Source of the DNA: Dimorphilus gyrociliatus
Taxonomy: Eukaryota > Animalia > Annelida
DNA: 64,000 nt
Assembly (NCBI GenBank): GCA_904063045.1
Contig: CAJFCJ010000008.1
Span: 1,054,001-1,118,000 of the forward strand
Reading direction: 5' to 3'
Positions 40,828 to 53,000 of this stretch are shown piece by piece. Made by a program: the position numbers and the translations under genes. The notes under the pieces were generated by a model. It searched no databases. It saw only the letters and a list, made by a program, of their open reading frames with translations, and was not told the DNA's origin. Position 1 is the first letter of the stretch. Each line of letters begins with the position of its first letter.

Positions 40828-43421
40828 TTATAACTCATCCTTTTTCTGAAATAAAAAATATTGATAAGAATACTATTTTTAGCAGAGTTAAGATTTAATA
40901 TCAACTTACCGTATCACTATCGGCTGCTTCTTCAACTTTTTCTGCTACTTCAGGTTTCTTTTCATCAGCTTCGTCTTCTACTTCATCTTCGTTGCCTACT
41001 TCTTCTTCATCATCTTCTTCTCCAGCTTCTTCAGGTTCATCTTCGACCTTTTCATCAAGAGGGACGTTTAATGACAATCTCAACATATGTTCAATACGCT
41101 CTGCAAATCCTGAAGTATCTTGTAAACCATATCCAGATCTAAGGGTAGCTGTTTCCATAAGAACAATAGCTAAATCTTTTGTTGTTTGGTCTTCTTTGTT
41201 CGTATCGACTCGCTTTTTAAGTTCTTTAACGAGGGGATGTCTTGGGTTGATTTCTAAAGTTTTCTTTTGAGTGGCATAGTATTGGTTGCTGGTGTCGCCT
41301 GCTTTTTGGTAAGCTTGAGCTTTCATGATTCTTTCCATATTTCCGGACCATCCGTAGGAAGAGGCGATTAAAGCACATGGTGAAGTGGTCAATCTTTCAG
41401 AAACAACAGCTTTTTCAATTTTGTCCTTAAGAGCATCCTCCTTCAACCAGGTTGTTAGAGATTCAAAATCTTTTTCAATAGCCTCCTTTCGTTCTTTGGC
41501 CTTTTCAGAATCATCGATTTTAACTCCTTCTTTGGCGACGTTCTGGAATTTTTTGTTGTCAAATTCAGGTAGGGCTTGGATACAATACTCGTCAACCGGC
41601 TCAGTCAAGTACAAAACTTCGTATCCCTTTTTCAATAGTCTTTCAACAAATGGTGATTGTTCAACTTCAGCTCTGTTAGAACCAGCAACAAAGAAGATGG
41701 ATTCTTGTTTTTCTTTCATGCGTTCGATGTAATCGGCAAGAGAGGTGACACCATCCTTTGAGTTGGAGGATTGGAATCTCAAGAGTTTTGCCAATCTGGT
41801 TCTGTTGGAATGATCTTCAATAACTCCGAGTTTGATGTTGGTGCTGAATTCTTTCCAGAAAGTTTCAAAATCTTCTTTGCTCAATTTCTTGATCATGTCC
41901 AAAGTCTTACGAACCAATTTCTTCTTAATGACTTTCAAAAGTTTGTGTTGTTGAAGAGTTTCTCTGGAAACGTTCAATGGCAAGTCATCACTGTCGACAA
42001 CACCCTTCACAAAAGACAAATATTTTGGCATCATATCTTCGAAGTTATCAGTGATGAAAACTCTTCTAACGTACATTTTGATTTGATCGATCTTTTTACC
42101 ATAATTTTGGAACATATCATGAGGTGAACTCTTAGGGACGAAGAGGATAGATTTGAAGGTAACTTCACCTTCAGCAACAAAGTGAGTAAAAGCCATTGGA
42201 TTATCGTGATCCTTTGAGAAGGATTTGTAGAATTCGTGATATTCTTTATCTTCAACCTCAGAGGTTTTACGGGTCCAGATAGGTTTGTTGTCGTTCAAAA
42301 GTACCCAATCCCAGACGGTTTTCTCAACAGTCTTCTTTTGACTTTCGTCTTTTTCATCTTCAACTTTTCCGTCTTCATCATCAGATGATGGTTTTGCTTC
42401 TTCAGAATCAGCTTCCTCAACTTTTTCAGTCTTGGAATCCCAAAGGTAAATATTAAAGTTGATAAATTGAGAGTATTTCTTAACTAAATCTTTAATGGTG
42501 TTTTGTTCAAGGAATTCATGAGCTTCTTCTTTCAATAGGAGGGAAATTGTGGTTCCTCTTCCGAGGGTATTTCCTCGTGGATCTTTTGAGATAGTGAAAG
42601 AATGAGCATCAGATTCCCAAATGTGTTGTTCATCATCGTTGTGTTTAGATGTAACAATAACTTTGTCAGCAACTAAGAAAGATGAGTAAAAGCCAACGCC
42701 AAATTGTCCAATCATATCAGTCATTTCTTGTTGGTTTGAGGCTTCACCCAGTTTCGTCAAAAATTCAGATGTTCCAGATTTCGCAATTGTACCCAAATTA
42801 TTTATCAAATCGGCTTTGGTCATACCAATACCAGTATCGGTTATATGAAGCATTCGGTTGTCTTTGTCAGCTTTAATTTTAATAGACAGTTCGTCCATAT
42901 CGCCCATAACACCTTTATCAGTAACAGAGAGGAAACGGATTTTATCTAAGGCGTCAGAGGCATTAGAGATTAATTCTCTAAGGAAAATTTCCTTGTTCTT
43001 ATAAAGAGAGTTGATGATGAGCTTCATCATTCGATCAACTTCTGCTTGAAACGTGTGTTTTTCCGCCTTTTCGCGCAGTTCTTTCATTTGAGCAACATTC
43101 AAACCGTCCAACTTAATAGCTTCCTCTTCACTGAAAGACCGGTCAATAAGTCATAACGTAATTAAATATTTATGAAGATATATACCGTTGAACAACTTCG
43201 TCATCAGTTCTGGATCCGTCACGGCTTTTACCAACGCTTTCTTCAACTGTATCAGCTGAATCTGACGATTCGGCGCTTACCAGTCCTGTGAAATTGGGCG
43301 TTATGATAAAAAGCGTTTTTTAAAGCTGAAATAAATAGAACATAACTAGAAAATGAGATGATTCTTTACCTGACATAAATAGAAAGCCGAGAACGGCTAG
43401 TAGGAGAAATTTTCGTTGCAT
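40828..43421 (-). CDS. HSP90B1: Endoplasmin / GRP94, 4 coding exons: 43421-43371, ~43325-43186, ~43131-40910, 40845-40828 (KKDEL*)
   Basis: Signal peptide [81 protein letters not shown] and LNVSRETLQ. The terminal exon aaa aag gat gag tta taa follows a 64-bp GT-AG intron. Confidence 0.98.
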
Positions 43422-43507
43422 TTTCAATGCAGAATAGTTATTCGTTGCGAATGAAAACTTCTAATATGCCGGCTACTTCGATGGAGGGATTCTCGGTTAG
43501 TAGTAAT

Positions 43508-43911: not shown

Positions 43912-46900
43912 TTAATTATTCAAATAGGTTAGAATTGAGTCTTTAATTTCAACATGAACTAATAAGTATCCAAATTGTAGATAGTTCAACTTGGAATCGA
44001 ACAGGGGAACTTTTCTGTGGCCTGTAATATGAAAGTAAAAGAACAATCAGTATCATCTGGGGTTATTCGCCATATTGTAAAAAAAATGGAGAAAGCAAAC
44101 CTTGTTGTAGGCATCTAAATGGTAGAGTATAGTGAGCTAGATCGGAATCTTTACTCGCTTTCTTCACTCGGAAAGACACGTGAGCCAATTCAGGCAATAA
44201 AACTTTAAACGAAAAATGTTCATTCCATTCAGCATATAGTCCTAAAACAAATCAATTATAAATTAAAACATACATCAAAGGGGCGGAGCAGAAGAGGAAT
44301 GATAAGAAAAGGAAATAAAAAAATTATTAGTCGTTTATTACCATCGCATTTTTGTTGTTTTGTCGATCTTCTGTTTTCTTTCAAGTTTTCATAACCATTT
44401 ATATGTACTTGAATAAACAACTTTTCGGTTGCGGGTAGCTGATGACCGCTAATAATCTAAAAATATTGTAATAATTACAGATTTTTTTTTAGTGGTTTAT
44501 AAAAATGAATTAACTGTTTTTACCTTCAAAACAAGAACTTTGTAGTTTTGAATTTTCAGTTCTTGAATATTGGGAGAATATTCAGCTAAAATAAATTCAT
44601 TTTGAATTAATAAATTTAATAATTGATATATATATATATACTGTATAATACCTTTTTGCATAATATCTGGCTTTAGGATATATCCACATCCTCCATTATC
44701 CCTAAATTGTCCCTGGTTTATTTGCATAGCTCTATCAGAGGTCTGATAGTTGAGAGCAACTATTGAATAATAATTGATGTTTAATATATTATAATTGAAT
44801 TTTGTACTCATTCCAACAATCTTTACCCACCTAATTGAGATCCAGCACACCACAATGGAACTGGATCGTAATTGCTGGAGTTGACCCTCTTTCCAGAGGG
44901 GTATATCCTACTAAGTTGTCGTTTATTGTATTTAAGAAATTGTTTTCCTTCATCCTTTAGAATTTTCATAGATCTTCCCTCGGCAAAAGACGACATCTGG
45001 TGCGCATTTTCTGAAAGTTAATCTTCTTATAGATTGTGGCTTACTTTTTCATTTCAAAACATGATTGGACAAGAAAAAATTTTGTCCTACTTATACTTAT
45101 ATATAATAGCTATGTTATATTAAGAAACTTGAATTCCTTAATAAACTTATGAATGTTTAGCCTACTTACGAAGTTTTGCTGAATCTTCGAAAGATTTAAA
45201 GTGAACAGCCTGACAAATGACAATCAAATCCGAAAGTTCCCGAGCAACTTTAACTTTAACCTTTTTCGAATTAGCACTTGATTTTGATGGAGAAAAAATT
45301 GATGCTTTCCTAGAATTACTAGAATTCGAAGAATCGGGTTTAATGGTCGTTTCTTCTGCGGCTGTTGATTCGATTTCTTCTTCTACATTAACTATTTCAT
45401 CGTCGTCATCGTCACTTTCCGATTCGCTTTCTTCTTCGGTTTCATTTTGTAATTTCTTAGCCTATATTCAGTACATGTTAGTAGTTGCTATAGGCAATCA
45501 ATACTTTATAAGATAGAATATATATAGATACATATATAGCTATATTTTTCCTTGGAATTAAAAGACACAAACTATAAAAAAAATTAGTCTATCGATCGTA
45601 ACTTTTCTCCTTTTTTTTTAGTTCTTTTTAAAGTTTGTTGGCGAAATTCAAGTACAAATTAGCTATACACTAGACATAACATATATATGTAGAATAGATA
45701 TACAGTATATACCAAATACTATATATATATAAGCATAAATTACTATATTGAGATTTTTTGTTTGCATTATTACTTTACTTTGTTCTTTACTAAATCAATA
45801 CATAAATTAAGGAATGCAATGAATCATCGTATTTTCAGTACTGACCTTAACTATCACTTTACCCCGTAAATCGTATGGACTAGGTAAGGTATCCGAACAA
45901 CCGCTAGGTAGTTCCGTTAAAAGGTGTTCTATTTTATCAAAGAATAAGAAAATAAACAATCAGGGTTAGATTTCATAGAAAATAAGATATCTAAACATTG
46001 GTTTCTTTTCTATACACTATACACTATGTTCATTACGATCTGAATAGTTTTTGAGTTATTAATTCAAGTGAGTCGGCCCAGCGGCAGAAGTATTTCAACT
46101 ACATATAATAAAAGTATACAGAACATATGCACAATATTCATATATTCTATAGATATATATTAATAGATGTAAGTAAATATTCTGTATTATGTACTGTATA
46201 CAGTACATGTTTAAAGACAGAGTGCATAAAAAAGACTCTAATATATAAAGTTGTTGTACGTTTGTATGATTGTATACATTATACAGTATGTTATTGCATA
46301 CAATATAATATGTAAAGTAGATTGTATGAATAGGTGTTAATTAAATATATATAATAGGTTTTACAGACCTCCAAGCTCTTTCTGTAGCATTTCGGCCATA
46401 ATTTTTTGATTTTCTAAATTACAATGATTCTCAAAGCTGAGTATAACAGGGAAAGGATTACCCATTCTTTCTAATCTTTCCTCCCAGCTATTACCTTCAC
46501 CCTCTTTCGCTTGTCTCTCTTCAAAAGCATACTGTCTTATAGCTTTTATAACATCTACAAAGGGAATTTTTGAGCATAAGGTATGACCATGAGTTATAAT
46601 AGGCTCGTTCTTTCCATCCCAAATATCAACTGCATGACAAGATGAAGATTTAATTATGCTCTTTTCTTAAAATTCTTTTGAAAAGTTAAGAAAACTATGA
46701 TAATGATGAGAAAACGTACGTTCAACACAGCGGCAAGATCTGGTTAGAGCCTTAACGTACATATTGACATCACTTTTACTTTTCAATTGGTCCCCTGTTA
46801 AGTAGCTGTGGAAAAAGTTTTTGCATTTATCCCGATTAAGAGAAGTTAAAAAAAATGGCTACAAAATTCAATATAGAATAAAATTCTAACGTATTGTGAG

Positions 46901-48698
46901 AAGTAGCTATAAAATAATCGGATAAAGGCCTCTTCATGTCTTGATATACGACTGTGAATTCCCTGTTGAAGATATTTTGTTCGTCAGACAGTAGAAATTT
47001 GATGAAGCCATCCTGAGAAAAATTTAAAACAGGAGCTATCCTTTCAGTGTTCCTCATCCATGTTTTTAGAAGGCTAATGGAAAATTTTTCTTTTTGCTCC
47101 TCTTCGATAAAACTTTTAATTTTATCCGTGCTTAGGATGTAATCGTCACCCAAAAGGCGTTCGTATAGTGAGACTATATATGGTATTTGAGTAATTGTTC
47201 TATAGAAATCCGCAAATTTTTGGCAGTCTAAATAATGAAAGTCCTTCCCACGGATGGCTTGTGTCTGTTTTAACGATTGAAAGCTTAAAAGAGATTATAC
47301 TGAGCTTTAGGTATTTCTAGAGGATTATCAATGTTGAGAAATGAATATGCAACTAAGGAGTGACAATACCTTAAAAAATTCTTTCGCACTGTTAATGTCT
47401 ACAGGAAATCCCATATCCTTGTTAATAGTACTAACAGCTAATTCTCTATCCATATATTTGGTACCATCTTCTAAGCGGTTCTTTTCAGCAATTCTTTCGA
47501 ATACTGTTCTCTCAAAATTATTTCTTTTACGCTCGAAATCATAACGAACTAATCTTTCTACACCTAATTTCCAATTATTACATTCTTCTTGATTCTCTCC
47601 GCAAATTGTAACATATTTCTGCCGCCATCCCAAAATGATATTGAAACAATTATCTTTATCCGTCAAACTCGGCAGACTTGCCGCTTTGCACGAACCAGGC
47701 CCAATTCGCGAAATTTTGCCAATGTTAATTATGCCGAATGTACTAAAATTTTCTCCTTGAATAATATTATTTACTTCGATATAACTCAAGTTAGTTTTCA
47801 CTCGATATAGGCCATCATTAGAGTTCTGATTCTCGTCATCGAATCGTAGGCCCAACTGTTCTTGTCTTAGTGTTTGGCCGATATCATGGTCTTTATTAAA
47901 TACATAAATAATATTAGTAGTTATATAAACATAAAGTTAAAAACCTGCCAAAGAGAAAAAAAATCAGTAAAAGACCAAAGCAAAGAATAAAGATCGATTA
48001 ATAAATGTTAAAAAAAGATTGAATAAAACAAAAATTGATTGATATTTAATTAAAGTCAACCTCTATATAAACATATCAATTTCTTAAGTACTAAGAATTC
48101 TGTATTAGATATTTTGTTATCGTTTTTTTTTACATACCTGATTCAAATACAACGTTCCTCCCCTGTCTGACCTTTGGTGCACTCAGATATTCGTAAGAAT
48201 AGATAAAGGCTGCTGCACAGAGAATGGTCGCTATCTTTTTTTTCGAAAAAAAAAAACAATGGCGTAAGTTTTAAAATGGCTAAACGGAATGGAAGTGAGC
48301 AAGAGAAAGAGAGAATACCAGGAGAGACAGGTAGATAGATAAATTGAAAATAAATGATAAATAAACTTATCTATCAATAAATATATATATATATCTATAT
48401 ATAATTATATGGTATATATAGATATTGATGTTTATATATATATATATATATATAAATTTATATATATATTTATTTATAAATATACATCAGCTAATTTCTA
48501 TTTGAGATAACTCACCGTACTTGGAAGCATGTACCAAGAGATAACAGTTAAACATTCACCGATTATAGCAACTCCAATTAATTCTTTGCCATTCTTCTTA
48601 AGTAATTTCATATAAAATATTAGACCAGTTAAAAGAATATGAAGGATTATTAATTTTATAGCAATAAAGCCATACGAGCCATAAAGAAGTTCAAACAT
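43912..48698 (-). CDS. Phosphoinositide phospholipase C, delta-like layout (PH-EF-X-Y-C2) with a hydrophobic N-terminal extension
   Basis: X box [62 protein letters not shown] box [51 protein letters not shown]2 domain ends GHRKVPLFD...YLLVHVEI. Both catalytic His are present. The two 5'-most exons (48698-48516, 48234-48138) were inferred from splice phases. Confidence 0.93.
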
Positions 48699-48747
48699 TA
48701 TTTCTTTTCAAATATTATACTATCTTTTTTTCTTCTTTTATCTTTTT

Positions 48748-48782
48748 TCTCTCTCTCTCTCCCTCACTCTCTCACACACACA
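48748..48782. repeat. (CT)n(CA)n compound microsatellite just upstream of the PLC start codon
   Basis: ctctctctctct ccctcactctctcacacacacac. Confidence 0.8.
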
Positions 48783-50019
48783 CTATTTTAAACGTTTCTG
48801 TCTCTTCGAGTCCGTCGTCTGAGGTAAAAATTGTTTAAATATTAGTCACTTGGCTAATAGATAAAGTCGCGTTTGTAAACGACAAATATAAACCTTTTTT
48901 CACCTGTTGGCCTCGAGACAAAAAGCAGCTATATAATCGCCTTTTAAAAAATGTATATTTAAGGCCGCCTCTATCGTTCTAATCTATTCGATAAAAAAAG
49001 AAGAATTCCCAATGATATCAACGATTTTTACAAAATATATAAATAAAAAATATTACTTCTCCTGTATAATTTATTTAATATATGAATATATATTTAAGAT
49101 ATCTATGTATTTATATTAAGTTGTAACGTACTTCTTAAGAAATCTTTTCTATAAAGGACTGTATGAAATATAAAAGGATACATAGTCTCTGATACTATGC
49201 CCAGTTGCGCTCTCTTACGAGTTTTGTAAATATTATTTCAATCATTGGTCTTGTTTGGTCGTTTATTGTCGAATAGAAACATTTCAATTATAAACTTCGA
49301 GTTGGTCTTAATAGAGATAAAGTATTTTTATAAAATAAAATCTTTTTCTTTCTTTCAAGAGTTGATAATAATAATTAATGGATCCGAACTAAAGTAGGAT
49401 TTTGTGGGAAGAAAAAAGAGTTAGATGTTTTGCAGACATTACAGAGGTTTTCGCTCTTAACATAACTTTTCGATATATGCATTAGGATCTAATATACACA
49501 TTTTTTTTTACCTCTCGGTACGTTCAAACAGTAATATAACTCATTTTTACAAGTTTAAATGAAATAAAAGTATTAAATCTGCATCAGTTTCTCGTTAATA
49601 ATTTTATTACCTATACGAATATACACTACATGTATTTAAAATCAAACACGTAAGCGTACAAAAGCATTTATTTGTATATGTGAATACTGTGTATATAAAC
49701 TATATATACTATATATACTAATATATTTGCAAGTGTTACACTTTGAAATTGATACAAAGTTTGATTATAGGCCTTCAGAATGTTCATACAATAAATAATA
49801 AAAAAAATAAATCAGTTCCGAAAGATAAATTGTCTTATCTTTTAAATAACTTGTTTTATTAGGTTCCTTCAAAATTTTCTTTGATTAACTAACGCATATA
49901 TATTCTATTCTCCGTTTAGAATTACTCTCTCCCTTTACATTCATTTTCTTTTGAGTAGCTAATTGTTTAAAATTTGAAAATTTAATACTTTCTTTATATT
50001 ATAAAGTTTTCTAAGGCGT

Positions 50020-53000
50020 TCATTTAGTTGCTGGTGTTCCTAACATTATTACGCCTGATTCCCTGCCCAGAAATTGAATTGGATTCTTTTTATGAAAGCA
50101 AACGAGTTCGGACAATGTTTGAAAGTTCTGCGTTAGAATAGAATAATATTAATATTTGATAAGAGAAAATTATTATCCAATAATAATTACAGGTTCATCC
50201 AATTTTTCCTCACCAATTGCGAAGTGACCATCTGATTTACGTCTTATTTTTATATTTAGGACCTTATATTTGCATAGGATCATTAGAGTGAAAGGCTGCT
50301 TCTGATTTCCCCCAGTAGATTTTCGGATAAGAAATGATCCGTTCTACAAGATAATCAACGAATTTATACAAATTATTAGGGTCAATCATGTTCAATTTCA
50401 ACCTGATTGATTTTTAAAAGCTTTTCATTGCCGTCTTTCCTAGAAATATCTCCATGATACCAAGGTTGATCTGCTGGTCGCAAAGATGATACTTTTGGTG
50501 GTTGTTTCTTTTTCCTCTCTGACTTTGGAATTTCTGGTAGAGGTCTGTTAGTATTTAGCAAACGGGGCAGTTCTTCTGACGAAATTTTTCTAGGTGATAT
50601 TCTACCTTCGACTATAGGATTTACTTGAAAGTTGTTTTCATTGCCATTTTGTAAACAAGGAGTTTGCCTTTCAGACAGTTTAGTCGGTTCCAAATAATCC
50701 TCCTCACCCAAATTGGGTTTAGTCGGAGCCAAGGGCAGATATTCGAAATTAGGTAAACTTGAACAATGATTATCTATGATAAGTAAAAAAATTGTTTGTT
50801 CAGCTCTTTTCTAATCTTAGATGATATTTCGATGATATTAACAGCGAAGTGTATGTATAGTATAAATGATATTAATTATAAACGGTCAATTATTACGAAT
50901 CATTTATCTCAAGGAGAAGGAAAACATTGATTTTTAATTTAAAACTTGAATAATCTATCCTCAAAATATTTATATCTATGCTATATATTTAATCTCACAA
51001 TTAGTCATTTAGTCATTGCCATGGGAAATTTCCCTCGATATTTTATTTTTTTTTTACTTGTATATTCTAACAGAAAGTTACAAATTTGTTAAATACTTAC
51101 AGCCTGTGTTCGGAATATTAAAGCATGGTGATCTATTGTTAGTGGTTTGAAAAGCATGATTGTCATTCGTTTCAGGCGCTAAACAATATCAATCAAATTT
51201 CTTTGTATCATAAAGTTACAAAAGAAAAGAAAGCTTACGTTGAAGATGTAAATTTCCAGTAATGTTTCTTCTCGGTATTTTCAAGCATCCCTTTCTATTT
51301 ATAATCATTCAAAAGACTTATTAAACAAGAAGCACATAAAGAAAAAGTTATATATTATAATCAAGATTATCATAATATTTAATCTATAAATACCCGATTT
51401 CTTCTTCTACATTCACGTAGGAAGGCATACTTGTTCTTTAGTGTTTTGCATAAAGCTGTCTAATCTTCAACTTTCTAAACTATCGTCATATATGTTCTGT
51501 GCGACGTTTATACTCTGAGTAATAAATCGTTTGAGTCAAATCTAGGTAGTGATATAGGGCTTCTATCACGATTCTTAAGCTCTGGGCCTATATATTCTCT
51601 AGGTTTTTCCAATATGTAAATACCAAATACGTTCTTAAGTATACCCCAAAAACATGATAGGCTGATTATTTTTACTATTATATTTAGAGGTAGGCCCAAG
51701 AAATACGTTACGGATAAGTTTTGTAAGAATACGTGATATGAATCGCTTGGATTTTAATATTTATTATAAAATATATACAAAAATAGTTAGTTTACCGAGA
51801 GATGACTGTAAGATATACATATTTATAAACTTTTACACAATACTCCAAATGTAAATGCTTTTATTCATCGCTAGAATAAAACAATGTATGATTTTATAAG
51901 AATTACAAACAAACTCATTTTTATTCTTATATTCAGCTACTAATTCTTTTATGTAGTAATAGAATATATACCATGAATAACGAATAATCTCAATAATTTC
52001 TATATTAAACAGGAAATTGTGAAGTGCTTCCTATTTTGTAAAAATTCTGGAAAAGAATGATTTTGTCAATATTTGCTCCTTTCTTCTTTGAACTCCAAAC
52101 TAACAATCTTCATTTACTACCCAATCTTGTAGTATAACGGACACATCGTTGGATAAAGATAATGGTTCTTGTCGAAATTTTTCAATCATAGTGGCAACGC
52201 TTGGAAAGTACTAGAGAAAAAAAAACATAAGAATATAGATTCTATTCTCTTGAAAGCAATATGATCAATTTAACCTCTTCATTCGGTTTTTCCTCACCAA
52301 TTGCGTATCCCTCCCAGAGTCTGGGATATGGATTACGGATTCTACGAATTCGTAAATTAAATATTTTCGATTTGTCTTTAATCATAATAGTGTAGGGTTG
52401 GTTGGCTTTTTGAGAATCGCGAATTAAGAATGTACCATCCTGAAATATAAAGATTAACCTTTGAAATAGCATATAATACTCATCAATAAATCATTTATTA
52501 CCTTTTCGTTTTCTAATAGACTGTTTCCAAGGGGCCTTGTTATATTACCGTGGTACCATGGACATAGGTCAATGCTATTGCGTTTTTTGCTCTCTGCTTT
52601 TGCAATAAATGTAGGTTTATTCTCAATAGGTGGCTTTGGTAGTGGCATTCTCTTTCTACTGGAGTCGGATCCCGTGTCGGATGTATTAGAACTTCGATTT
52701 GAGCTTGGGTTCTTGGCTTTTGGTTGTGAAATAATCCTGTTCAGATCCTCTTTGAAAGAATCATCGATACGGTTTCCATTGCTATGATCACTTTGAATCT
52801 GATAAAAAGAAGCTGAGTTTTATATCAACGACATGTGAGACAAGCCTAAAATTGTCCATTTAGAATTTACTAACGGAGGTTTGGCTAATATCTTTAGCTA
52901 CCGACAACTCGGAAGCACGTGGTGTCAACCTTGTATCTGAAAGTCGGGGCTGTCTGCTATGAGTTATTGGAGGTGGTGATGGTGGTCGATTGGGATTGCG

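Follow-up and report, generated by a model that had tools for sequence, protein, structure and literature searches.

Does a phospholipase C (PLC) gene of the annelid Dimorphilus gyrociliatus encode an enzyme that is anchored in the membrane by its own N-terminus? The gene lies on the minus strand of a 64,000-nucleotide stretch of contig CAJFCJ010000008.1 (assembly GCA_904063045.1, positions 1,054,001 to 1,118,000; hereafter the window, to which all positions given below refer). A preliminary description of the window had joined two short exons encoding hydrophobic segments to the pleckstrin homology (PH)-like exon of this gene, and had proposed an integral membrane PLC in which a transmembrane anchor has replaced PH-based targeting. 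Regulation of animal PI-PLCs is largely a matter of recruitment to the membrane, and to our knowledge the well-studied isozymes (beta, gamma, delta, epsilon, zeta, and eta) are all soluble; a hydrophobic N-terminus such as the one predicted here is a feature not seen in the studied animal PLC isozymes. Here we report that the two upstream exons are conserved as coding sequence in a related species and fit the PLC in phase, and we consider it rather probable that the gene encodes a delta-type PLC with an N-terminal membrane anchor specified by its first two exons.

The gene was traced from its open frames and splice motifs and with the help of the related species, and its total length was taken as the sum of the exon lengths. 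The resulting model comprises 14 exons (Table 1), all joined at GT-AG sites, with a coding sequence of 2613 nt corresponding to 870 codons followed by TAA at 43912-43914. As the preliminary description had pointed out, the PH-like exon 3 lacks an early start codon; its frame is open for 173 codons and the first in-frame Met is residue 146 of the exon. The translations, donor sites and phases (0, then 1) of the two upstream exons were likewise as described, with exon 1 opening with ATG and encoding 61 residues and exon 2 encoding 32 residues plus one base, which would add 93 residues to the PLC. The corresponding acceptors are the AG dinucleotides at 48235 and 47891, and skipping of exon 2 would break the frame. 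An in-frame TGA is located four codons 5' of the exon 1 ATG, and no ATG was found within the 484 nt upstream of it. The window is AT-rich (26-37% GC, about 26% locally around exons 1 and 2). Introns 1 and 2 measure 281 and 247 nt, and the compact genome of D. gyrociliatus has a median intron length of 66 nt (PMC7854359).

To which extent the two upstream exons are conserved was addressed in a related species. A HMMER search with exon 3 retrieved one related open reading frame (ORF) with 69% identity on Logan contigs of another species (L010 and L011), the only other match being an unrelated repeat protein. Gene order is kept in that species, the PLC being followed by HSP90/GRP94, and all 14 exons could be mapped to the syntenic contig with AG and GT in place and with unchanged lengths, except for +3 nt in exon 8 and -6 nt in exon 12. 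Exon 1 showed 83.6% protein and 83% DNA identity, no indels over 183 nt, and a conserved ATG and GT donor, and exon 2 showed 90.6% protein and 93% DNA identity, no indels over 97 nt, and a conserved GTATGT donor. These identities are within the range of the catalytic exons (83-96%) and higher than that of the PH-like exon (72%). Substitutions at codon positions 1, 2, and 3 numbered 10, 4, and 17 in exon 1 and 1, 1, and 5 in exon 2, and the ratio of nonsynonymous to synonymous substitutions (dN/dS) according to Nei-Gojobori was 0.136, 0.207, and 0.215 for exons 1, 2, and 3, at a dS of about 0.7 for exons 1 and 3 and 0.2 for the short exon 2. The alignments of introns 1 and 2 contained 102 and 177 gap columns, respectively. 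Since both exons are free of indels, retain their ATG, splice sites and lengths, and show low dN/dS between introns filled with indels, this comparison identifies exons 1 and 2 as genuine coding exons under purifying selection that are no less constrained than the exons of the PLC.

We infer that exons 1 and 2 are spliced onto exon 3 in the mRNA, because exon 3, though coding, lacks a start codon of its own, because its acceptor sits in a 59-nt block across the intron 2/exon 3 boundary (47871-47929) that is identical in both species, and because the preceding interval is indel-rich and varies in length (247 nt in the window versus 424 nt in the related species) as an intron would. Moreover, the phases fit in both species and the frame would be lost without exon 2, and no other conserved block with coding features is present upstream; apart from exons 1 and 2, no conserved ORF seen between 49600 and 47891 combined an ATG with a phase-1 donor. 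The assignment also draws on the reported absence of trans-splicing and operons in this species (PMC7854359). In both species, exons 1 and 2 thus appear to be the only conserved candidates that could provide the Met-less exon 3 with an in-phase start.

Three other explanations of the two exons have to be weighed against this assignment. The preliminary description had cautioned that AT-rich DNA readily gives hydrophobic ORFs and that the exon 2 acceptor at 48234 is A-rich, and the low local GC content and this acceptor do speak for a chance origin of both exons. Yet the concern about the acceptor is eased by the related species, which has aaaacag/ at the same position, and the indel-free conservation of the exons, the bias of substitutions towards third positions, the dN/dS values of 0.14 and 0.21, and the retention of ATG and splice sites at a dS of about 0.7 leave next to no room for chance ORFs. 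Similarly hydrophobic ORFs are also rare, as a comparably hydrophobic 19-residue window occurs in only 4 of 69 ATG-initiated ORFs of at least 60 amino acids in the six frames of the whole window, making a chance origin barely credible. Alternatively, exons 1 and 2 could constitute a separate gene for a small membrane protein of about 96 residues located just upstream of the PLC, which would then start elsewhere, for instance at Met146, which would make it zeta-like and PH-less, or in an exon that escaped detection. Such a gene would profit from the in-frame stop three codons past the exon 2 donor in both species (giving a protein ending in ESGM) and from an ATTAAA-like motif inside the 247-nt interval. 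It would, however, leave unexplained why exon 3 begins with 145 open codons that are free of indels and under constraint and still lack an ATG, why the exon 3 acceptor and the 40 nt preceding it are identical across species, and why the GTATGT donor and phase 1 are kept next to an intron-like interval of variable length; no other conserved block is present upstream of exon 3, and trans-splicing and operons are reported to be absent from the species (PMC7854359). We therefore regard a separate gene as quite unlikely. Finally, the anchored form could be one isoform among others, with an alternative promoter or first exon, unrecognisable by conservation, giving rise to a soluble PLC as the main product. 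Introns 1 and 2 exceed the species median and could house regulatory elements, but the lack of any other conserved ATG ORF with a phase-1 donor between 49600 and 47891, together with the loss of frame upon skipping of exon 2, makes a soluble main product very unlikely.

If exons 1 and 2 form the N-terminus of the PLC, the next question is whether this N-terminus spans the membrane. All three hydrophobic stretches of the preliminary description are present, but only the first is clearly of transmembrane grade, the summed Hessa apparent free energies of segments 1, 2, and 3 being -0.2, +1.7, and +3.2 kcal/mol. An apparent insertion energy near or below zero over about 19-21 residues was taken as indicative of a transmembrane segment, and segment 1 sums to -0.17 kcal/mol in the window and -0.06 kcal/mol in the related species over 19 residues. 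An AlphaFold2 (AF2) model of exon 1 consists of helices 2-35 and 39-57 with a mean predicted local distance difference test (pLDDT) score of 78, helix 2-35 reaching about 85, and residues K15, H20, and E48 within the predicted helices are kept in the related species. The only matches of exon 1 in the Atlas were generic small membrane proteins of bacteria and phages, which fell below the recognition threshold. Taken together, the N-terminus encoded by exons 1 and 2 is predicted to hold one clear transmembrane helix and two marginal ones. According to the positive-inside rule, which is well established, the charges flanking the helices would place the enzyme body in the cytosol if the chain crosses the membrane once or three times, whereas two crossings would not. 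In the topology proposed here, the enzyme body would be cytosolic and the N-terminus would face the lumen or the exterior.

The same properties may be read differently, in that exons 1 and 2 are true 5' exons of the PLC but their hydrophobic region does not form a stable multi-pass anchor. Instead, it could be a monotopic hairpin, a helix bundle buried within a soluble protein, or a secretory signal, cleaved or uncleaved, that makes the PLC lumenal or secreted. The marginal helices 2 and 3, the polar residues K15, H20, and E48, and the Tyr/Glu-rich ends of the segments are compatible with this, as is the two-helix hairpin in the AF2 model of exon 1, which would leave both ends on one side of the membrane. 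In contrast, the first segment, with its 21 residues and a free energy around zero, exceeds the length of a typical signal-peptide core, and the K-rich flank that follows it conforms to the established pattern of a reverse signal anchor. Furthermore, both the substrate phosphatidylinositol 4,5-bisphosphate (PI(4,5)P2) and the regulation by Ca2+ are cytosolic. A PLC whose hydrophobic region is not a stable multi-pass anchor therefore seems unlikely, and a transmembrane anchor preceding a cytosolic PLC remains the explanation we prefer.

The predicted catalytic core of the encoded protein is that of a delta-type eukaryotic PI-PLC. Pfam searches placed EF-hand_like in exon 4, directly ahead of PI-PLC-X in exons 5-6, and PI-PLC-Y in exons 9-10. 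The best PDB match of the EF/X exons was PLC-delta1 (E 1e-17 and 6.8e-13, the latter for exon 4), followed by cephalopod PLC-beta and PLC-zeta. The motifs SHNT, CRCVE-LDIWDG, ITHGHT, SFENHC, MSSFAE, and LSRIYPSG are all present; SHNT, LDIWDG, ITHGHT, and SFENHC of the X domain were recovered in the alignments to PLC-delta1, and MSSFAE and LSRIYPSG of the Y domain align to PLC-gamma1 and PLC-delta1. In PI-PLCs, the X-domain motifs SHNT, CRCxELD, HGxT, and ENH contain the catalytic His, Glu/Asp, second His, and Glu, and the Y-domain motifs SF.E and LSRIYP contain substrate-binding Ser, Arg, and Tyr. The equivalents of the catalytic H/N, E/D, H, E, S, R, and Y are thus kept, in line with the intact active site noted in the preliminary description. 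The X-Y linker is a single, very acidic exon, and the X domain carries an insertion of about 20 residues compared to PLC-delta1 (46460-46520, exon 6) between the YAFE and NPFPVILS motifs. Exons 11-14 are all kept in the related species with their AG and GT sites; scanned as separate pieces of 35-46 residues they gave no Pfam match, and their likeness to the C2 domain of PLC-delta1 was recognised by eye. The 14-exon model contains no SH2/SH3, RA/CDC25, or beta-type C-terminal domain and ends right after the C2-like exons.

The genome of D. gyrociliatus (77.9 Mb in 349 contigs in the assembly searched) contains about seven further PI-PLC-X loci, located on contigs C2, C9, C13, C15 (two loci), C31, and C3, and one of the C15 loci (C15:1270007-1271721) also has an EF-hand_like match. 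The locus on C31 (approximately 157.8-159.2 kb), with matches to PH_12 (53 bits), EF-hand_like (47.6 bits), and the X domain (207.9 bits), encodes a canonical PLC-delta. Since the same genome holds this canonical enzyme, the PLC of the window can be considered an extra, divergent paralogue. No second copy of exon 1 was found in the D. gyrociliatus genome, word-based searches with exons 1, 3, and 4 returned the same related species or nothing, and a metagenome scan with the exon 1 alignment found nothing. These searches thus yielded one related species with the extension and none further, and the gene probably represents a new, lineage-restricted, divergent delta-type PLC. Our literature search found no report of a transmembrane animal PI-PLC, nor of a PLC in Dimorphilus.

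The canonical paralogue also provides a reference for the PH-like domain, which is divergent in the window gene. The PH profile PF00169 scored 15.1 bits on exon 3 of the window, below the cut-off of 25.1 bits, and 25.1 bits, at the cut-off, in the related species, and the match spans residues 44-114 of the exon approximately, corresponding to profile positions 38-104, i.e., the C-terminal two thirds of the domain. By Atlas features exon 3 is nearest to PLC-beta PH_14/EFh and PLC-delta clusters (0.88), which serves as a lead only; exon 3 had 0 matches among PDB sequences, and its BLASTP comparison to the PH exon of the C31 paralogue was not significant, with only the C-terminal half aligned sensibly (E = 11). 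The preliminary description had proposed a reversal of charge in the loop that binds phosphoinositides in PLC-delta1. The 12-residue sequence in question is indeed present at 47846-47811; its equivalence to the beta1-beta2 loop of PLC-delta1 was judged by eye and draws on the marginal PH match and on charge counts. Among the first 45 residues of exon 3, K+R and D+E number 4 and 7 in the window and 3 and 8 in the related species, compared to 10 and 4 in the C31 paralogue, which keeps a basic PH loop (IKVRANSRHYNR). Hence, the N-terminal part of exon 3 is acidic in both species, opposite to the basic canonical paralogue, and by these charge counts exon 3 lacks the basic beta1-beta2 loop that is a hallmark of PLC-delta1, the equivalence of the loops being plausible. 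As many PH domains lack a basic motif, an acidic start is unremarkable by itself and becomes interesting only together with the anchor. Presumably, the PH-like domain no longer binds PI(4,5)P2.

Several observations weigh against a membrane-anchored PLC. The extension was found in no organism beyond D. gyrociliatus and one related species, and the conservation is accordingly backed by that single species. Helices 2 and 3 are marginal and carry charged residues, and with a topology of two spans the enzyme would not face the cytosol. Read-through of the exon 2 donor ends in a stop codon right after ESGM in both species, and a separate 96-residue protein is thus formally possible. In addition, detection of the PH fold is marginal, and exon 3 gave no usable AF2 model (pLDDT 41). 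Set against these points, the upstream exons proposed in the preliminary description are coding, conserved and compatible in phase with the PLC; the further claim that the anchor has replaced PH-based targeting goes a step beyond and is retained here as a conjecture.

The arrangement we envisage is as follows. Exons 1 and 2 would encode about 93 residues that anchor the protein at its N-terminal end through one clear transmembrane helix and two marginal ones, the short N-terminus being outside, in the lumen or at the exterior, and the KLLKKNGKE loop and everything after the last helix being in the cytosol. The body consisting of PH-like, EF-hand, X, Y, and C2-like domains would thereby be held permanently beside the cytosolic leaflet, which contains its substrate. 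The PH-like domain would have lost the basic phosphoinositide loop that recruits PLC-delta1, and tethering would be expected from the helices for that reason. As with other PLCs, Ca2+ and the strongly acidic X-Y linker would still control activity, and a membrane partner or signal might be coupled to the enzyme through the polar residues within the helices. Whether the gene represents the first integral membrane PI-PLC of an animal, having gained a conserved three-helix anchor with buried K15, H20, and E48 while its PH domain lost the phosphoinositide loop, and having passed targeting from a lipid-sensing domain to a permanent tether, is in our view an evenly balanced question. If so, the gene would be a natural evolutionary experiment on the recruitment principle, raising the question of how activity is restrained once recruitment is no longer the switch, for which the acidic X-Y linker and Ca2+ are candidates, and of the role of a PH domain that no longer binds PI(4,5)P2. 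The scope of this would be limited to D. gyrociliatus and one close relative, and D. gyrociliatus can be cultured and has a compact, annotated genome, which makes the idea testable.

The comparison with the related species also revealed conserved sequence upstream of exon 1. The longest exact interspecies match in the region is the 96-nt block listed in Table 1, which is more conserved than any nearby coding exon (dS of about 0.7) and contains CAGGTG, an E-box- or CTCF-like motif, with TATATAGC just upstream (approximately 48931-48938). A non-coding RNA was considered and rejected, as Rfam had no match to the block and neither strand showed a sign of folding (z = -0.7). Probably, the block is a control element of the PLC gene that belongs to the (core) promoter or the 5' untranslated region (5'UTR). 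The region 5' of exon 1 as a whole looks like a promoter and 5'UTR, because of the in-frame TGA, the 484 nt without ATG, the 96-nt block, and an AATAAA further up at 49267. Further exact interspecies matches are located at 49199-49237 (39 nt) and 49277-49310 (34 nt), the AATAAA (49267-49272) being near the second; possibly, these matches lie where the upstream gene ends. Neither the (GT)n/(GA)n microsatellite at 48735-48785, within the presumed 5'UTR, nor the (TA)n runs at 48380-48480 in intron 1 are kept in the related species. In the window, the block 47871-47929 holds a branch-point-like CTAAT and, out of frame, a short ATG..TAA reading frame (ATGATATCGGCCAAACACTAA), the TAA of which is altered in the related species.

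Upstream of the PLC, and separate from it, a gene at approximately 50173-50732 on the minus strand is represented by ORFs with an SH2-like start (WYHGDISRKDGNEKLL) and following strands; the first of these ORFs gave no Pfam match at E<0.01. On the other side, an HSP90-family gene at 40901-43111, also on the minus strand, has a single-exon body of 736 residues, and the short ORF at 43320-43427 (minus strand) upstream of this body looks like a signal peptide, suggesting a GRP94/endoplasmin-like protein. In the related species, an HSP90 identified by Pfam also follows the PLC (L010 7010-9343).

Table 1. Positions in the window of the PLC exons, of the predicted segments of the encoded protein, and of the conserved upstream block
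Feature	Position	Strand	Description and basis
Exon 1	48516..48698	-	ATG and 61 codons, phase-0 end, donor acg/GTGAGT
Exon 2	48138..48234	-	97 nt, phase 0 to phase 1, acceptor aaaaaaaag/, donor cag/GTATGT
Exon 3	47370..47890	-	PH-like domain and first EF-hand region, 173 full codons
Exon 4	46891..47264	-	EF-hand-like domain and X-domain start (..SHNT); PF09279 37.2 bits
Exon 5	46720..46805	-	X domain (YLTGDQL..CRCVE); PF00388 30.4 bits; 96% identity to related species
Exon 6	46369..46629	-	X domain (LDIWDG, ITHGHT, SFENHC) with insertion of ~20 residues; PF00388 74.7 bits
Exon 7	45846..45928	-	X-domain end; open frame, splice sites, comparison with related species
Exon 8	45170..45461	-	Strongly acidic X-Y linker and Y-domain start; frame, splice sites, comparison
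Exon 9	44831..45010	-	Y domain; PF00387 66.1 bits; PDB PLC matches
Exon 10	44652..44759	-	Y-domain end; PF00387 48 bits
Exons 11-14	44585-44524, 44456-44342, 44241-44101, 44021-43912	-	C2-like C-terminus and TAA stop
Predicted transmembrane helix 1, residues ~10-30	48609..48671	-	Kyte-Doolittle 2.36, Hessa -0.2; conserved K15, H20
Basic loop KLLKKNGKE, predicted cytosolic	48582..48608	-	Net charge +3; sequence; AF2 turn at residues 36-38
Marginal transmembrane helix 2, residues 40-58	48525..48581	-	Kyte-Doolittle 1.89, Hessa +1.7; conserved E48
Weak third hydrophobic segment, then basic SAPKVRQGR	48184..48234	-	Hessa +3.2; identical in related species
Acidic stretch at expected PH beta1-beta2 loop position	47811..47840	-	Translation, charge counts
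96-nt block identical in related species	48828..48923	-	130-225 nt upstream of start codon

How does the enzyme proposed here compare to known PLCs? An N-terminal membrane hold in place of a PH domain has precedents among trypanosomatids, as the PI-PLC of Trypanosoma cruzi is N-terminally acylated and a PI-PLC-like protein of Trypanosoma brucei is said to have a transmembrane segment. These enzymes belong to another kingdom and have other domain sets, and in T. cruzi the hold is provided by lipid, not by helices; no sequence relation of exon 1 to trypanosomatid PI-PLCs was detected in the word-based and Atlas searches. Among animal enzymes, PLC-zeta shares the delta-like core, being the second or third best PDB match of the EF/X exons, and does without PH-based targeting. 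In contrast to the window gene, which keeps a PH-like domain and adds a hydrophobic N-terminus, PLC-zeta is soluble and has no PH domain. PLC-delta1 of rat (PDB 1DJX, 1QAS family) shares the predicted order of PH-like, EF-hand-like, X, Y, and C2-like domains as well as an acidic X-Y linker. Compared to PLC-delta1, however, the PH region of the window gene has diverged so far that it matches no PLC by sequence, its start is acidic where PLC-delta1 has a basic loop binding PI(4,5)P2 and inositol 1,4,5-trisphosphate, the X domain is enlarged by its insertion, and the protein would be preceded by an N-terminus with one to three predicted transmembrane helices.

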